Shown here piece by piece: positions 50,775 through 59,180 of a stretch of 64,000 bases of DNA. The first letter of the stretch is position 1, and each line of letters begins with the position of its first letter. The stretch comes from Anthoceros angustus (taxonomy: Eukaryota; Plantae; Anthocerotophyta): positions 1 through 64,000 of the forward strand of contig VJWM01000296.1 in NCBI GenBank assembly GCA_010909165.1, in the 5' to 3' direction. The notes beneath the pieces are model-generated. The model saw only the letters and a program-made list of their open reading frames with translations, did not search any database and had not been told where the DNA came from. Both the position numbers and the translations under genes were made by a program.

Positions 50775-53700
50775 TCACTCGTACGGATTACGGAATTTCT
50801 TGAGCAAGTTCGGAATATCATGACCCAGCATGTCATCCACTGCCTGAATCATCTTGGGACGTATTTTCTCAAACTTGTCGATGCTGTAACCCGATAACCT
50901 GTCTCGGAAATGGTCCACGTTTGGAAAATCCCCAGCGGGTAGATGGTACTCTCGTTGTACCTGCTCTCGTCGAGATTCAACATGTAACTTCAGTGCCCCA
51001 CGTATTTGGCAAGACACATAAATGGCTGAGGGGTGGTCCAAAATCCATACCTTGGCAAACTCAAGATCCAAATCATCGATAAGTCGTTGTTGTGCTTTGT
51101 TTTTCCCCATCATCGCAGGCATCTCTCTTTTCAGGTGGCTGATGATGTAAGCATGAATTTTGGCAGCTCGAGCACGTTTCACAAACTCATTAATCTGTAC
51201 AGCAACCACGCAATGGTTTGAAAAATCGCAACACTTAACTGCCATCAAACAGCATCTGTCCTGACACAAGTCATTCTTACACGTCGGTCACAGGCTTTTC
51301 TCGGGATGTCCTTCAAGTCTGCCAAGAGGTCGTTTTGTTCCCTCTCAAAAAGCTCCTTGCCAATCGGACCCATGGCATTTTCATTGATAGCCTTGTCGTT
51401 GAATGACCTGCAAATTAGCAAATTGTAAGAACCACTAGTTCAATCGTCACTTACAGCAGGAGGGATCAACCGTTGCTTACCCAATGTACACTCGCATGAC
51501 CTCAGGAGTATTAAGGACCTTCCCGAGAGACCACATCAAAGCTCCATACACCCGCATAAGCTGTCCCGCACAACACACACATGATGAGGAAAGCCTCTCT
51601 CGTGAGGAATCACACCCTCTTCTTCTTCAGAAGCTCACCTGCTGTGTATCAACTTGATCAGCCTTGTTCAGGACAACCCGGATTTTGTCATCATGCCCTC
51701 GTAACGACCCAATCACGCGCTTGAATTCATCACTGATGTCCAGCTTATGCGGGTCAAAAAGAAGCAAGATCATGTCACACTTGGCTGCAAACCATTCAGT
51801 GACACCAGTGAAATCGTAGCTCCGTTGAGTGCGCTGCTTCTCTCCGGATAACACACCTGGTGTGTCCACAAAGGAAATGTGCTCCAAAAGCTGCAAAGCA
51901 CATCCCAACAACATCCAACGTGAAGAACATCAGAAGACTCACTCACGCAGCAAACGAACACTCTCAAAGCACAATTCAGTCACATCAGCTCTCAGATCAC
52001 AATTCAACTCATCAACTCACCGAATGTGGCATCTGTGAGCACTCAAACTTCGACAGGAAAGCAGTTCCGAATCTTGTCAGCCCACTGAAGGGCATATCCG
52101 CTTGTACTGCTATAGTATTCCCTGGAACATTTCTTTCATCTGTGCCACCCTGCCAGGCAAAAAGGAGTCATAACAGAACACAGTTAAGCTTAATAGAGTT
52201 TGAACGAGATTGAAGATGAATGGCAACACACATACCATCACAACTACAAATCGATCTGTTGTGGGTTCTGGCCCAATGTGAGCTCCTACACATGGAAGAG
52301 CAACACTTTAGAATATCCATACAGATTACAATGAAACAAAAAATGCTTTGGAGATCATAAGAGAAACCTTGTAAAACAAACAGAAGGAGTAACATGGGCA
52401 CCTCGGTCTTACCTGGATAGCTAGTTCTCAAAAGATGTTTAATAAACGTGGTCTTCCCAGTGGAATATTGCCCAAGCAACATAACCATGGGTTTTGCATC
52501 AAAATCACTCTCCGTCTGCAGAGACCGATGAAGATCAGTGATTTAAACAAGTGTGACGAGCAAACAAAGATCAAACACACCCTGTGCATCATGGATTTGC
52601 AATGGCAAAACAATAGCTGAGAAAGCTTACCAATATAGGGGACACAAAGTCATTGAATCTGTAGGTCACCTCCAAAGGCTTAAGTTTCTCTAGATACAAC
52701 TTCTTCAGCCCATCAATCACCGAGGTTACTGATGCTTTGGACAACTCCTGCAACTTGCCCTCATCAGACATAAAAGGAGTCCACCACAGAAAAAATTTGA
52801 TATGTGCAGCTTTGGACCTCTGCGGAAAAGACTAGGAATTGAGTTGCAGCAGTTCGTAACAGCATACCTTCCGTGGGGTTTTTTGTGAAAACCATTGCGC
52901 AGTCTGTGATTGCTGCGGAGGACTGCCTGCCATCAAATTCCCCTCACTACCTTAACAACTGCAACATCGAAACAAAAGTCCTTCCCTGTTTGCAAAACAA
53001 GCCCAATGCTCTTTGAGCAAGGCGGGATAGGCAAAACAGACTAACCATTGGCATACCCTGCTTCCACTGGTGGGGACTGAAAATGGCCAAAGAAGGAATC
53101 AGGTAACACACTACAGCAATCTCAGTGAAGACCTTGACCAAATCATAGAAAACACCCCTGGCTCTGCATCTGTGCTCTCGCTTGAGGCATACTCACATTC
53201 AGCAACTCGTCGAGTCCATTAAAAACTGGGGGGCTTATCTCTGACAGATCTGATACAGACAATACAAGGTCAGAAAAAGGAGTCCCACTTTCGTTAAATT
53301 TAAGAGGTAGTCCATCTTCCAGAGATTGTGAGCTGAGATTTACCACGCCTCTTGAGGATATCAGCACTGATCTCGTTACCTGTTTGTGCAAGAGAAATAA
53401 TCTGCACGGCCATTTGGTGTCAGGCCTAGGCCATGGATATTAGAGGCACGCTTTACCATAAAATGGCTTCGAGCTTCAACACACACAATGCAGAAAAGTT
53501 TCTTGCATTTCACTGCCAGCTTAGTCTGTGGAGACAGATCCAAGGACAAACCTGCATTGCAGTGACAAACTCTTTGAAGCCCAAGAATCCCTGCCGCTTT
53601 GAGTCTGCAACTGCCCACACCTAGAAGCACAGGGATTAGCACCACTTGTCACCACTACCACTAAAAGACCCACAGCTCCAGAGACTGCCAGCGATCAAAA

Positions 53701-54227
53701 GCTGTGCAGGCACTAAAACACTGACCAGTAGGCCTTGTCGAGAAGAGTACCTGCTTGAGGTCGTTCCTCGAAAGCTCGGATAGAGAAAAAAATTTGACAG
53801 CATCTTGACCTGTGATCCGCCCATCGCCGTCTGCTCGCAAGAAAAAAGCAGTTCAATCAGTGCCCGGGCACGAATACACTCGCGATCCAACACCCAACGG
53901 CGAGTCTTATTTGGTCCAGATCGAGCAGTGGCAGCAGTGAATGGTTCATAGCACAATCAACAGAGCGGCTACAAATTACGACTGGGATCGCCTCCATCAT
54001 CAGCCAGCTCCAGTAAGCTGAGCGCGGCTGGTTGCTGCAGGGAGCGATGAGAACGCAAGAAGCTGGTATCACGCTGAGGTTAAAGAACGCTCATGCCATT
54101 TGAGCCAAGATTGGTGAATTCCGAACACGACAGACAGCGCACCTGCGTCCGCGTAGTCGAACCAACGCCTGTAGAGCTGCTCATCCTGCTTGGCGTAATT
54201 GCCGGACTTGAACTCGAGGATGTCCAT
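50775..54227 (-). CDS. EHD1: EH-domain-containing protein (plant EHD1 type), many exons
   Basis: [17 protein letters not shown]|DGDGRITG (EH domain), [27 protein letters not shown] (P-loop), [21 protein letters not shown] and KKFRNPYE*. Confidence 0.96.
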
Positions 54228-54839
54228 GTCGAGGCAGCTGGGAAGGCAATCCGGAAGCAGAGGATCACAGTGAAAAGTAACAACCGGAGAGCGTGCGCGA
54301 CGCAGCTCTGATTCGAGTGCGAACCGGTGCTTCTGCCTCCATCCAGAAGACTCAAATGTTCGGCGGGTTCGGCGGGAAAGACGAGCTGGGCAGGAGGGGG
54401 AGAGTAGGAACCGCGGAGATACTGTACAGGAAGGGAAGAAATGCAGACCGATGTTAACCGCGTCCGCGTTCGAACCACAGGCTGCAGCGAATCAGATGGC
54501 GCCACCCCGAGATCAATACGTACCGACTGCGCACTGATGATGGGGACGGGCCTGCTGGCCTCACAGGAAATTGAAAGACAAAAAGGAGAAGGGGGTGAGT
54601 TTCCCTTTGAATCGCACGACGGCATGCAAGCATGCGTCACATGTGCACAGAGAATAAAGTTCGTGAATATACAAATCAAGTCTCTTTCCCAAGAAGCTAA
54701 AGGAATGATAACGAAGGGATGGTTGCTGTCCACCTTACAGGAAAACAACCATCCCTTACTACACCGTGTTCTAACAACCAGCCAAGACGAGACAGACAGA
54801 CCGACGGCTGTTTCCATCGTCCGCCGCCCAAAGGGCCCT

Positions 54840-57800
54840 AGATAACCGTCCCGTCCTTGATGATGGAGTTCTTCAGGATCACCGCGATGCCTGAGCGGAT
54901 GTAGAAACCCTCCGATGGCCTTTCGGCTTCCAATACATTCTGGACGACAAGCGACCAACAAGGGGTCACTCATAACTCAGTGTACTACCAGCTACATTCC
55001 AGGATTGTGGGGCACTAGGCACTTACATCCGTGTTGGCGATCACCACGTCTCTGCCGATTCTTGCGTTCTTGTCGATTATAGCATTGCTGCACGAAATTC
55101 ACAACGGCAGGCTCACACACACTGGCCATCCGAAATACAAATGCAACCATGCACTGTTGGGCCAGTACAACACCTGATTTTGCTGTTCTCGCCGATCCCT
55201 ATTGGCACTTTGCCTTCAGCAATAAGGGCAGCCCTCTCTACGTCCGTTTCGTAGAAGTCTGCTCCCAGCATCAGAGTGTCCTGGACAAGCCCCAAACGAC
55301 AGCTGAATGAAACCATCGAGTAGATCGAGTATCATGCCCCGAAGCTAAGTGCAGAACACACCTTCAATTCAACACCGTTTTCCAATCGGGATCGGACCCC
55401 TACGATGGAGTGAACAACGCTACACTCCCGCAAAAAGCACCCATGTGACACGATGGAGTCCTGGATCTGAGATGAGCAACCAATGACTATTAGCATTTTG
55501 TCACGATCCACATACTTCTCCCTCTCGCTGCAGGCCATCAAACTTACCCTGCACCTCTCAACCTTTGTTGGTGGGAGATACCGGGGTGATGTGAAGATGG
55601 GCTTGTTTGCGTCATAGAAGCTGAACTTCGGGGGCTGTAGTAACAGGTATACCATGAGGGACAGATTAACCAAACTAAGTCATGGACCCAGCCAGCATTG
55701 TGGACAATTAGCAAATAGCCAGTATCTTAACGTACCTGCGCAGTCAAAGCTAGATTGGCATCGTAGAAAGACCTAATTGTCCCAATGTCTTCCCAATAGT
55801 CATCAAATAAATACGCCTGCAGAAGGCCAGTCATGCTTTCACTAAACGGTCCAACCGTATGCAGATAATTGGGTACTTCAAATCAACTTTCACTTACCTG
55901 TACATTGAACTCCTTCGCAGATGCAGGGATAATCTCAGAACCAAAATCATTCGCTAAGGGATATCGCCATCTGCAAATTCCATGGCACAGAAGTTTTACA
56001 GAGGGTGTACAAACGACACATACCTTACGCTCGGCCAAGAGTAGGAATCCCAAGACACTTTCGAGCAGTAAGGACTTCCTTCTAATCCAAGTTCATACGG
56101 TACCTCAACAGCTTGAGAAGGATGTCCTTCTTGAAGACATAAATACCCATAGAAGCAATGTAAGGCTTTTTCTTGGCATCTTCTGCAGATAGACCTAGGA
56201 CGGTCGTGTCGACTTGCTGGTGGGGTACACCAATACACCCCATCAGTGCCTGAACGTGACAGCACATGGCCACAAGCATAGAGTATACGATAATCAGTCC
56301 GTACCATAGCTCTTAGATCAGCTCCCTTCGGTTTCTCACTGAAGGACAATATTTGCCCCTTGTCGTCAATCTTCATCAGGCCAAAGTCGGAGGCCCGACT
56401 GCCAAAACAACATGACCACAAAATGTCCCGTTACTAGAATGTACAAGGTAATTCACATAGCAGTACCAACCATCCACAGCGAGGAACTCCATGCTTCTCC
56501 TCGCTGCATACCTGTCATCCATGGGGACACACGAGATGGTGATATCTGCACCACTGTCTTTATGTTTCTGCACATTCATTTGCATATTGCACTATGAGTG
56601 TCGTCATTTGGAGTACCAAACCATATCCACTGACCCATAAAAAAAAAGAACTATAACAACAATCACAGGGAAAAGGTCTATAAGGGACCTGCACAAAATC
56701 CATGTAGTCCATGCGGTACAGATGATCTCCAGAGAGAATCAACACATTTTCAATCTGCTTGTTCTTTGCATCCTGAGAAACAAAAGTTCAACCTCAATGC
56801 TCGGAAAAGTGATGTATACAGTTACGGTCTGGAGTGTCCCAGCGTTAGCCCTATATCGGAGTCAAATCCCACCATCCCAGTCAGTGCCCACATGTCTGCC
56901 CGCCGACCCACCCACCTATTCCTGACACACTCCCAAACGCACCTCAAACAACCACAAGTACTGCCGCACAGCATCAGCAGTCCCCTGAAACCATTCCATG
57001 CCACCTTCCCCAGGTGTCTGGGTGGCCGCCAAAACCTGCTCGAGGCAAGAACAGACACATGACAAAACTGAATTCAGTCAAATTCTTACGATTAACACAC
57101 CTCAAATACCCACAGAAATTGCCGCACAGCATCAGCTGTCCCCAGAAACCAATTCATCCCTGTTTCACCTGTTGTTTGGGTGGCTGCCAAGACCTGCTAA
57201 ACGACAAGCTTGTTATTTACACATAATCACAATAGTGGTGTTGGAGGGGCAGGGGCAAAACACTACTAGAGTGTTGCAAGCTAAAGGGAGACTGTGTGGG
57301 ATATCCAAGGCCCACTGTTACCTATCTACGCCAAACATGAAATGGGTAAAGAGTGCCAGTAACAGCTCACCTCCACAAACCCGTCCCCGAAGTTTACACC
57401 GTTACCAAAGTTGTAGGTGCGAGCAAGGTGCCGATTAAGCGAGGCTGAGTTAAACTGTGTCAGAATGAACACTTTGTTGATCCCACTGTTGATACAATTG
57501 CTCATGGGGACATCAATGAGCCTGTAATTGCCACCAATTGGTACCTGCAGCACACATTGGTATCAGCATGAGCTCACTGTCTACTGTAAAAGGCAATACC
57601 CTCCTCCATGCTGCATTCAAGCTAAAGTCTTGAGGCTGCACTATCTGGCTTCGCACTTTAATAAGGCAGCCGCAGACCTAGTATCCAGTTGCCAGACAAA
57701 AATCCATTTGAAGATATCAGACGAAGATGGTGCAGCAGGCATAGAGCTTCTAGAAAAACGGGGCTTACAGCAGGTTTTGCTCGCCTCTTTGTAAGCGGGA

Positions 57801-59180
57801 AAAGTCTGGTTCCCGCTCCACCTCCCAAAATGACAGACACTACTGTCCTGGGGTCCACTCGGGACTGATCAACAGAAGTGGCCTGAGGAGGGCACCACAA
57901 ATTCTTGTCAGTAAACAGCATTGTAAAACAGGTGATGGAACCAACAACTGCAAACAGCTGGAGGGATCTGAAAGAGACGAGCTGAGGTCATCACGTATCA
58001 TCCCTTTGTCTAGACAGGCAACGGTAGACAGATGAAGCAAAAAGCAAACCCAGTGAGCGGAAGAGACATGCTGCCATCCAACAATGCCGTGTGGCAAGAA
58101 CACGAAAACATGGGCATAGAAAATAGGTACGCCAGCTACACTAAAAAGACCTAACTGATCATCAATCCGTGGTGAAAGCAGGTCTGAGCAGAAGTAAACA
58201 AAGTATGAACACACTTTCATATCACGGAGCTCTAAGGAAATGGTCGTTCTATCAACATAGTCCCATGAAAGCAAACAGAAGCAGGGTCCAGGTTAGTGCA
58301 GAACTCAAGAAAGCAGCTTGACACCTAGTCCCATGGGTCTACTATGTGCATGATATGAGTTTGCACCTGCAATGCAGACACAGATTACAGGTCACACAAG
58401 GCTTCGAGCCATATTGCTCACGGACTCAAAACTTCAGGCTCCAATTGTCTGTCAACACACACTATTATCACACATAGCGTAACATGACGCGGTAAGATTG
58501 AATTTCATTCAACATTTCATGTTACTTGGAAACATTAAGCTGACAGCCAGTCAAGTCCCTGCAACACGGCCATACCTTTCTATATAACACTTCAAGCATT
58601 GGGTAGAAACAGGCAGCGGCAACCGCAAGCATTGATGGAATTACCCACCAGAATCCATACTGCCAGCAAGAAACCATTGCACTAGTTTGCGCATATTCTG
58701 AGTCACCACTACAATCCCTCATCACTCGTAACTACCTGGTCGTTGTTGACATTCACTTCTTCCACACGACCAGTCAAACGACTGACGCGATTGGCCTCGT
58801 TCAGACAGACAGACAGGAACAAAAATCTTAGACAAGCAAAGCGGAATGAGGCATGTCAGCTGCGGGCTTACCACGGTCTCCTTGGCCACCAAATCCGCCA
58901 ACACGGCAGTGGCTCTGACAGCCTTGGAAGCCCTCTCCGCTCTCCTGGGCTGACCGGAGACGGCACACAGCCGGGAGCCCCCCAAAGCAGCGCTGAAAAA
59001 ACCGCCGGACACGGGGGTGCCGAAGAAGGCGGCCCGCCCCAGTCTGGTGGCAGGCAGGGAGGAGTAGGAGGTGGAGGAGGAGGGCGAGGAGGCGGAGGAG
59101 GCAGAGCCGGAGGGCGAGCAGCAGGCTGCAGGCGCGGTGGATGACATGGTAGCCAGGCCACCTGCTGCAGCGGCTGCCAT
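54840..59180 (-). CDS. APL: ADP-glucose pyrophosphorylase large subunit, plastidial, multi-exon, with a duplicated internal exon
   Basis: Ser/Ala-rich transit peptide, [23 protein letters not shown]|[41 protein letters not shown] and [19 protein letters not shown]. Confidence 0.97.
56943..57035 (-). other. AGPase alternative exon B (93 nt): [31 protein letters not shown]
   Basis: GAGCAG acceptor, GT donor, open frame, phase 0/0. Confidence 0.9.
57101..57193 (-). other. AGPase alternative exon A (93 nt): [31 protein letters not shown]
   Basis: TAGCAG acceptor, GT donor, open frame, phase 0/0. Confidence 0.85.

Follow-up and report, generated by a model that had tools for sequence, protein, structure and literature searches.

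The DNA analysed here, the first 64,000 nucleotides of contig VJWM01000296.1 from the hornwort Anthoceros angustus (GenBank assembly GCA_010909165.1; hereafter the window), carries a complete gene for the large subunit of plant-type ADP-glucose pyrophosphorylase (AGPase), in which exon 4 is present as two intact tandem copies, designated exon A (upstream) and exon B (downstream). Exon B is the default exon in the mRNA, and exon A appears to be a conserved alternative to B that is used rarely or conditionally, a reading that we adopt tentatively and to which we give a little less than half of our confidence. Exon 4 encodes the Trp-containing regulatory loop that precedes the GTADAV motif and adjoins the ATP site. 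Starch synthesis is controlled at AGPase, whose large subunit determines the response to 3-phosphoglycerate (3-PGA) and inorganic phosphate (Pi), a response that seed plants vary with several large-subunit genes. A single gene carrying two versions of this loop is therefore of interest, and we evaluated how far an earlier interpretation of the same DNA made without database searches (hereafter the sequence-only reading), which proposed that the two exons are used in a mutually exclusive manner, agrees with RNA, comparative, and structural evidence.

The gene model, rebuilt exon by exon, comprises 16 exons with AG/GT at all borders and a single open frame, and its coding sequence specifies 550 amino acids with either copy of exon 4 and 581 amino acids, still in frame, with both. 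Pfam domains were detected in exon 3 (PF00483, NTP_transferase, 38.4 bits with a cutoff of 21.2) and exon 13 (PF25247, LbH_GLGC beta-helix, 31.3 bits with a cutoff of 27). The best match among solved structures was a plant large subunit, 9xuk_B, which scored higher than small subunits for exon 3 (95 versus 74 bits), exon A (40.7 versus 28 bits), and exon B (46.9 versus 34 bits). Both exon copies align to the large subunit without gaps, whereas small subunits are two residues shorter in the loop (TPGExG before WFQGTADAV). The nearest full-length homologues were named large subunits with 70 to 81% identity, and the full-length searches returned only relatives at 81% identity or lower among the matches listed. 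Judged from its sequence, the gene is that of an AGPase large subunit; the structure match, the homologue names, and the Pfam domains all agree with the identity given in the sequence-only reading.

Exons A and B are adjacent homologous exons of equal length (93 nt) and phase (0/0), contain no stops or indels, and have their own splice sites. In the order listed, the acceptors are tttagCAG for A and tcgagCAG for B, and the donors are GTGTGT for A and GTGCGT for B. This organization, including the CAG acceptors, the GT donors, the six-residue difference, and the 65-nt intron between the copies, is as the sequence-only reading had described it. Each donor matches six of eight consensus positions. 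The polypyrimidine content is 0.48 for A and 0.65 for B, compared with a range of 0.39 to 0.74 in the gene, and exon A has a GC content of 0.51 and a GC content at third codon positions (GC3) of 0.45, which are inside the range of the other exons. Splice-site strength or composition was thus rejected as a cause of A skipping, because the donors are equal and the tract and GC3 of A are within the range of the gene, although the tract of B is somewhat better.

The two copies differ at 20 of 93 nucleotides (78.5% identity), 12 of which are third codon positions, and at six of 31 residues (81% identity): P8T, G11T, E14N, Q17L, Y26F, and L29V. Using the Nei–Gojobori method, we obtained a synonymous divergence (dS) of 0.98, a nonsynonymous divergence (dN) of 0.12, and a dN/dS ratio of 0.13. 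No residual similarity was detectable between the introns flanking A and those flanking B, indicating that the duplication is old. Neutral evolution of A was evaluated with a strict null model, in which A has been neutral since the duplication and B takes synonymous changes only, with the probability maximised over all rates; the maximum p value for data as extreme as those observed was 0.013 to 0.019. A first randomisation test (p = 6e-5) was discarded in favor of the strict null because it treats every difference as neutral on the branch of A and is therefore overstated. The strict test gives support, modest since 31 codons cannot give more, for coding constraint on exon A over much of its history. 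Exon A was probably translated during much of that time, and translation probably continues today, whether at a low level or in a particular tissue or condition.

The RNA evidence consisted of two transcriptome assemblies, one with no differences from the window (X1) and one from a related organism with approximately 3% exon divergence (X6); contigs of such assemblies are proof of presence and not of absence, with rare variants dropped and intron retention poorly measured. In X1, exons 6, 5, and B are connected in the main contigs (depth 248), and the connection of exon 3 with B is found in a junction contig of its own (depth 231). In X6, one contig with a depth of 1166 runs through exons 2, 3, B, 5, and 6. 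The joint that skips 335 nt (57033/57369) is present in both assemblies, showing that the mRNA runs from exon 3 to B and on to exon 5, with A removed inside a 335-nt intron. Exon A was found in X1 only in one 391-nt contig with a depth of 9.7 (approximately 4% of the mRNA) and in X6 in a 180-nt contig with a depth of 58 (5%), where it is accompanied by 85 nt of the upstream intron. These results show that B is the default exon, accounting for at least 95% of the steady-state RNA in these two samples. Sampled words of exon A were also found in RNA runs of five studies. Two raw-read runs (X29 and X30) yielded no reads on this stretch.

The 391-nt contig of X1 begins 28 nt inside exon 3, extends without interruption across the 177-nt intron, exon A, and the 65-nt intron, and ends in exon B. 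Its ends coincide with the start and end required of a graph bubble between the spliced-to-B and the unspliced forms. An artificial duplication created by the genome assembly, which the sequence-only reading had named as a possible pitfall, can be dismissed almost entirely: this independently assembled RNA contig from the organism itself covers exon 3, intron, A, intron, and B with zero differences, the contig of the related organism also contains A with its upstream intron, and the divergence between A and B is unlike that of a collapsed or duplicated assembly. The depth of the X1 contig raises another explanation. The other three introns of the examined stretch have a depth of 0, and the interval containing A (57036–57370) has a depth of 9.7, compared with approximately 240 for the mRNA, which looks like selective retention of this intron at approximately 4%. 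Exon A might accordingly be an RNA-level decoy, that is, a pseudo-exon that attracts unproductive splicing and intron retention and so tunes enzyme output down; read on from exon 3, the intron containing A soon reaches an in-frame stop, the splice sites of A both resemble the consensus, and a similar level (5%) is seen in X6. A decoy, however, needs splice sites and not an open frame, and translation is indicated by the excess of synonymous differences (dN/dS of 0.13, with third positions accounting for 12 of the 20 differences). Intron retention is, in addition, poorly measured by assembly contigs, and we regard the decoy as improbable.

Neither a junction between A and B nor one between exons 3 and 5 was present in the contigs of X1 or X6. 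Their absence is compatible with mutual exclusion but uninformative while inclusion of A is unseen. It also bears on the idea that A and B are ordinary cassette exons, of which both could be included, giving a 581-residue protein with a repeated loop, or either skipped, giving a 519-residue protein without the loop. Inclusion of both or neither would keep the frame, as 93 is a multiple of three, and land plants can splice 62-nt introns. Nevertheless, besides the missing junctions, no homologue with two copies of the segment was found among those from well-formed gene models (>300 proteins), and a protein with this catalytic-domain loop doubled or missing would be unlikely to fold correctly; this explanation is very improbable. 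Within the set of homologues, a Cocos nucifera protein of 853 residues (P0270) was the sole member with two GTADAV motifs, and its length and an extra Pfam domain point to a gene model that is fused or mis-annotated and not to a tandem exon.

The related organism provided a further measure of how exon A evolves. The X6 contig with exon A differs from the window at 10 positions and by one insertion, and eight of the differences are listed: one in exon A, at 57140 (C>T), which by our reading of the codon changes GGG to GGA and is synonymous, and seven in the upstream intron, which also has the insertion. The other two are unlisted but fall no more than approximately 31 nt from the contig ends and belong either to the final 30 nt of A or to the intron. 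Exon A thus has one to three differences in 93 nt, compared with seven to nine and an indel in the 85 nt of adjoining intron and 16 in 522 nt of other exons, and the 177-nt intron upstream of A is approximately 10% divergent between the two organisms. Fisher's exact test gave a p value of 0.004, 0.027, or 0.12, depending on where the two unlisted differences are placed. Within these small numbers, exon A diverges like an exon rather than like an intron. Both copies hence show signs of purifying selection and conservation in a relative, modestly so with 31 codons and one relative. As to whether A is degenerate or absent in close relatives, which the sequence-only reading had raised as a sign of a dying duplicate, the related organism holds it with one to three differences; the pair itself did not occur in 89 other loci (see below).

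Several observations weigh against the use of A as an alternative exon. The X1 contig containing A has no internal break at the A acceptor or donor, which means that no A junction survived assembly, and no junction of exon 3 with A or of A with exon 5 was found in the contigs of either assembly. In both X1 and X6, exon A is contiguous with its upstream intron, with a depth of only 4 to 5% of that of the mRNA, so that no branch at the A acceptor survived assembly. Several RNA runs with the same organism label that hold the gene contain no exon A words. A search with the 47-residue peptide spanning the exon 3, A, and exon 5 junctions detected no A-containing product among the short proteins of a large collection, and it matched two distant fragments only. 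The statistical support for constraint on A comes from 31 codons only (p of approximately 0.02), the A/B pair was not found outside the lineage of the window, and Selaginella splices introns of 62 and 79 nt around its exon 4, so that a steric block between A and B is not assured. One hint points the other way. The X6 contig with A ends 1 nt beyond the A donor, and this end may be a branch point between intron (G TGTGT) and exon 5 (G ATGCA), since both continuations begin with G and a branch would fall there; it is a hint of A donor use and not proof.

Exon A may instead be a relic that once worked as an alternative exon, or that was constrained over much of its history, but is no longer spliced in, its presence in RNA reflecting unspliced precursor. 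The only mRNA seen is exon 3–B–exon 5, A is always accompanied by flanking intron, at 4 to 5% of the depth, the protein collection holds no product containing A, and RNA runs with the gene can lack A words. In addition, all six amino acid differences can be placed on the branch of A, because B is identical at 29 or 30 of 31 residues to B-like genes of liverworts and Sphagnum. On the other hand, the frame, the phase, and both splice sites of A are intact after a dS of approximately 1, neutrality since the duplication was rejected with a p value of approximately 0.02, two species with approximately 10% divergence in the adjoining intron show one to three differences in the 93 nt of A, and residues of A match variants found in large-subunit genes elsewhere. 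We consider the relic somewhat unlikely. Were exon A unused, the locus would represent an ordinary old exon duplicate, whose slow decay would still need explaining. We retain, tentatively, the reading in which exon A would be an intact and spliceable coding exon under purifying selection, serving as a minor or a condition- or tissue-specific alternative to the default exon B. As for the mutually exclusive use proposed in the sequence-only reading, the half that concerns B was seen as the exon 3–B–exon 5 mRNA, and spliced use of A was not seen in the contigs of X1 and X6.

More weakly, it may be supposed that B is skipped when A is chosen, through the 65-nt intron and the branch-like motifs near the A donor. 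None of the 13 other introns of the gene is as short: the smallest has 81 nt, and six of them fall between 81 and 88 nt. The only YTNAY motifs of the 65-nt intron are 9 and 23 nt from the donor, and the A of TTGAC is 23 nt from the donor. A comparable arrangement is that of exons 2 and 3 of alpha-tropomyosin, where the branch point is too close to the upstream donor. The case for the steric block put forward in the sequence-only reading is nevertheless weaker than presented there: Selaginella splices introns of 62 and 79 nt around the corresponding exon, and the argument hinges on the species' own minimum intron size. Other means of enforcement received no support. Incompatibility between U2 and U12 splice sites is excluded, as both donors are of the U2 type. 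Nonsense-mediated decay (NMD) could not police the pair, since the exon length of 93 nt is divisible by three and the frame is kept with both exons, as the sequence-only reading had correctly pointed out. No competing RNA structures or docking–selector sequences were found in the region, which has a fold z score of +1.68 and only short imperfect inverted repeats. Because none of these three gives support, the short intron remains the candidate for enforcement, if A is used at all. A working, regulated either-or switch, by which one gene would yield two enzymes differing only in the Trp loop, is in our estimation rather unlikely.

Changes to the loop affect enzyme function, in the large subunit as well. 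The Trp residue corresponds to Trp113 in the Escherichia coli enzyme and to W116 and W128 in the potato small (StuS) and large (StuL) subunits, respectively, and its replacement by Ala abolishes or reduces activation of the E. coli, Anabaena, and potato AGPases (PMC3691274). The W128A substitution in the potato large subunit also changes both 3-PGA activation and Pi inhibition, an effect tied to loop dynamics (PMC3691274). The assignment of the duplicated exon to this loop before GTADAV, and hence to a segment that affects allosteric activation, was already part of the sequence-only reading and agrees with these data (PMC3691274). The duplicated exon encodes exactly the loop that acts as this allosteric trigger. 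Two of the A/B differences flank the conserved Trp, namely E/N at −1 and Q/L at +2. The published substitutions, by contrast, are Ala at the Trp and at a Gln of the neighboring loop, and include none of the six A/B differences. With A in use, the large subunit would have an altered loop (the six changes listed above), and it is plausible that its response to 3-PGA and Pi would be altered as well.

To place the two copies in a wider context, we compared 89 loci, comprising named land plants, the alga Closterium, approximately 25 plant or green-algal metagenome contigs, and approximately 55 cyanobacterial ones. Exon 4 is a discrete, single 93-nt exon of phase 0 in the land-plant loci fetched (Marchantia paleacea, M. 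polymorpha, Sphagnum, Ceratodon, Selaginella, Physcomitrium, and Calypogeia). In Selaginella (L087:3275-3367), it has AG and GT borders and lies between introns of 79 and 62 nt, and the same borders, length, and phase occur in liverworts and mosses. A second copy of exon 4 was found in none of the 89 loci, and the tandem pair looks specific to the lineage of the window.

Separate genes, however, carry two flavors of the loop. A B-like loop (GG[K]...) occurs in a gene of each liverwort sampled and in mosses; exon B is identical to these B-like loops of liverworts and Sphagnum at 29 or 30 of 31 residues. An A-like loop (GMNWF[Q/M/L]...) occurs in a gene of each liverwort sampled and in one of Ceratodon, whereas vascular plants and Closterium have the QF form only. 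The sequence-only reading likened the QYLWLFE segment to small subunits and cyanobacterial enzymes; the resemblance is real, but the segment also occurs in large subunits of liverworts and mosses. Likewise, the WFL that it regarded as unusual is not unique to exon A: WFM is found in four annotated large-subunit genes of liverworts (P0158, P0170, P0172, and P0272), and WFL in an assembled fern-like transcript (P0177). Of the two large-subunit genes in each sampled liverwort, one has Met in place of the Gln of the near-invariant WFQGTADAV, and P0177 has Leu there; the loss of this Gln is thus a recurrent feature of some large subunits. A 186-residue fragment of a Sphagnum-like model (P0015) has a mixed loop, of which the first half is B-like and the rest has QFL as in exon A, which indicates that intermediates between the two flavors exist.

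The B-like loop is suggested to be the ancestral state of the large subunit, since intron-poor green-algal large subunits (metagenome contigs L010, L014, L019, and L022–L024) carry a B-like form in a QYSWLF variant; the QF flavor would have arisen in streptophytes, and exon B would keep the ancestral sequence. Exon A shares N14, F26, V29, and a hydrophobic residue after Trp-Phe (Met in liverworts, Leu in P0177) with the A-like genes, and L27 with B; by our count, it matches the A-like consensus at 26 of 31 positions and the B-like consensus at 24. At position 13, both copies have Met instead of the Lys or Asn of other B-like genes, a hint, though not a decisive one, of a lineage-specific duplication. 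In a gene tree built without the exon 4 columns, the backbone was unresolved, the gene of the window grouped weakly with lycophyte genes (Shimodaira–Hasegawa-like approximate likelihood ratio test, SH-aLRT, 87), and it belonged neither to the B-like clades of liverworts and mosses nor to the A-like clades. The tandem duplication of exon 4 is old and probably took place in the window's own lineage, the hornworts. A lineage-specific duplication with partial convergence seems more likely than an ancient pair later resolved into paralogues, although the two solutions could share an origin in an ancestral exon pair that was subsequently split between genes.

The coordinates of the gene and of the exons and introns around the duplication are given in Table 1. 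The next gene downstream (approximately 53000–54230, also on the minus strand) was read from the sequence as encoding an EF-hand/EH-domain-like protein.

Table 1. Features of the AGPase large-subunit gene around the duplicated exon 4 (positions in the window)
Feature	Position	Strand	Remarks
AGPase large-subunit gene	54838..59180	-	15 exons used at once and one duplicated exon; identified from the model, Pfam, structure match, and homologue names
Exon 3, ending GDGFVE	57371..57544	-	Donor joined to exon B in mRNA (contigs of X1, depth 231, and X6, depth 1166)
Intron upstream of exon A, 177 nt	57194..57370	-	Excised in the dominant mRNA with A and the 65-nt intron as a 335-nt unit
Exon A, upstream copy of exon 4	57101..57193	-	31 residues; intact, conserved, spliced form not seen
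Intron between A and B, 65 nt	57036..57100	-	Shortest and most U-rich (40% T) of the gene
Exon B, downstream copy of exon 4	56943..57035	-	31 residues; default mRNA exon
Intron from B to exon 5, 170 nt	56773..56942	-	Joint skipping 170 nt in X1 and X6, depth 0 inside
Exon 5	56689..56772	-	Joined to B in mRNA

The pair is a new candidate of a known kind, namely, tandem homologous alternative exons. Our literature searches brought up no account of an AGPase gene with duplicated or mutually exclusive exons. In barley and wheat, alternative first exons of an AGPase small-subunit gene give rise to plastidial and cytosolic forms. That case is likewise one of alternative splicing in an AGPase gene, but it involves N-terminal targeting exons selected through alternative promoters and not an internal exon for the catalytic domain of the large subunit. 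The tandem, mutually exclusive exons of animals, such as exons 7a and 7b of ATE1 (PMC7797038) and the sets collected in Kassiopeia (PMC3923563), share with A and B an equal length and phase, an origin by tandem duplication, the same encoded structural element, few changed residues, and a very short intron between the copies. The present pair differs in that only B is seen in the mRNA, neither competing structures nor U2/U12 incompatibility was found, and NMD cannot police the choice. Internal mutually exclusive exons have rarely been reported in plants, mostly as predictions (PMC3923563), and if the loop is indeed swapped by splicing, A and B would be one of very few documented pairs of this type in plants. 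They would also constitute a natural minimal experiment, in which two enzymes differing in six residues around the Trp show which of these tune allostery. A bryophyte precedent for the concept is CLU of Marchantia, where splice isoforms are reported to stand in for gene duplicates and both isoforms to be expressed (bioRxiv 10.64898/2026.03.13.711532).

The closest comparison is with the paralogous large-subunit genes of plants. Their duplication and divergence were described by Georgelis et al. in 2008, explicitly without data from liverworts or hornworts (PMC2529307), and the A-like and B-like genes of liverworts and mosses now present the same loop in the same two flavors. The suggestion in the sequence-only reading that one gene does the job of several paralogues consequently finds a counterpart, as these bryophytes have A-like and B-like loops in separate genes; the second isoform of the hornwort gene has not been seen. 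The paralogues differ over their whole length, fall into separate clades, and each have a single exon 4, whereas in the window one gene holds both versions and everything outside the loop would be shared. The match of exon A to the A-like consensus exceeds that to the B-like one by little (26 versus 24 of 31 residues), so that a common origin with the A-like genes is not shown. If exon A is used, then exon duplication in hornworts and gene duplication in their sister lineages would serve the same functional split of the AGPase large subunit.

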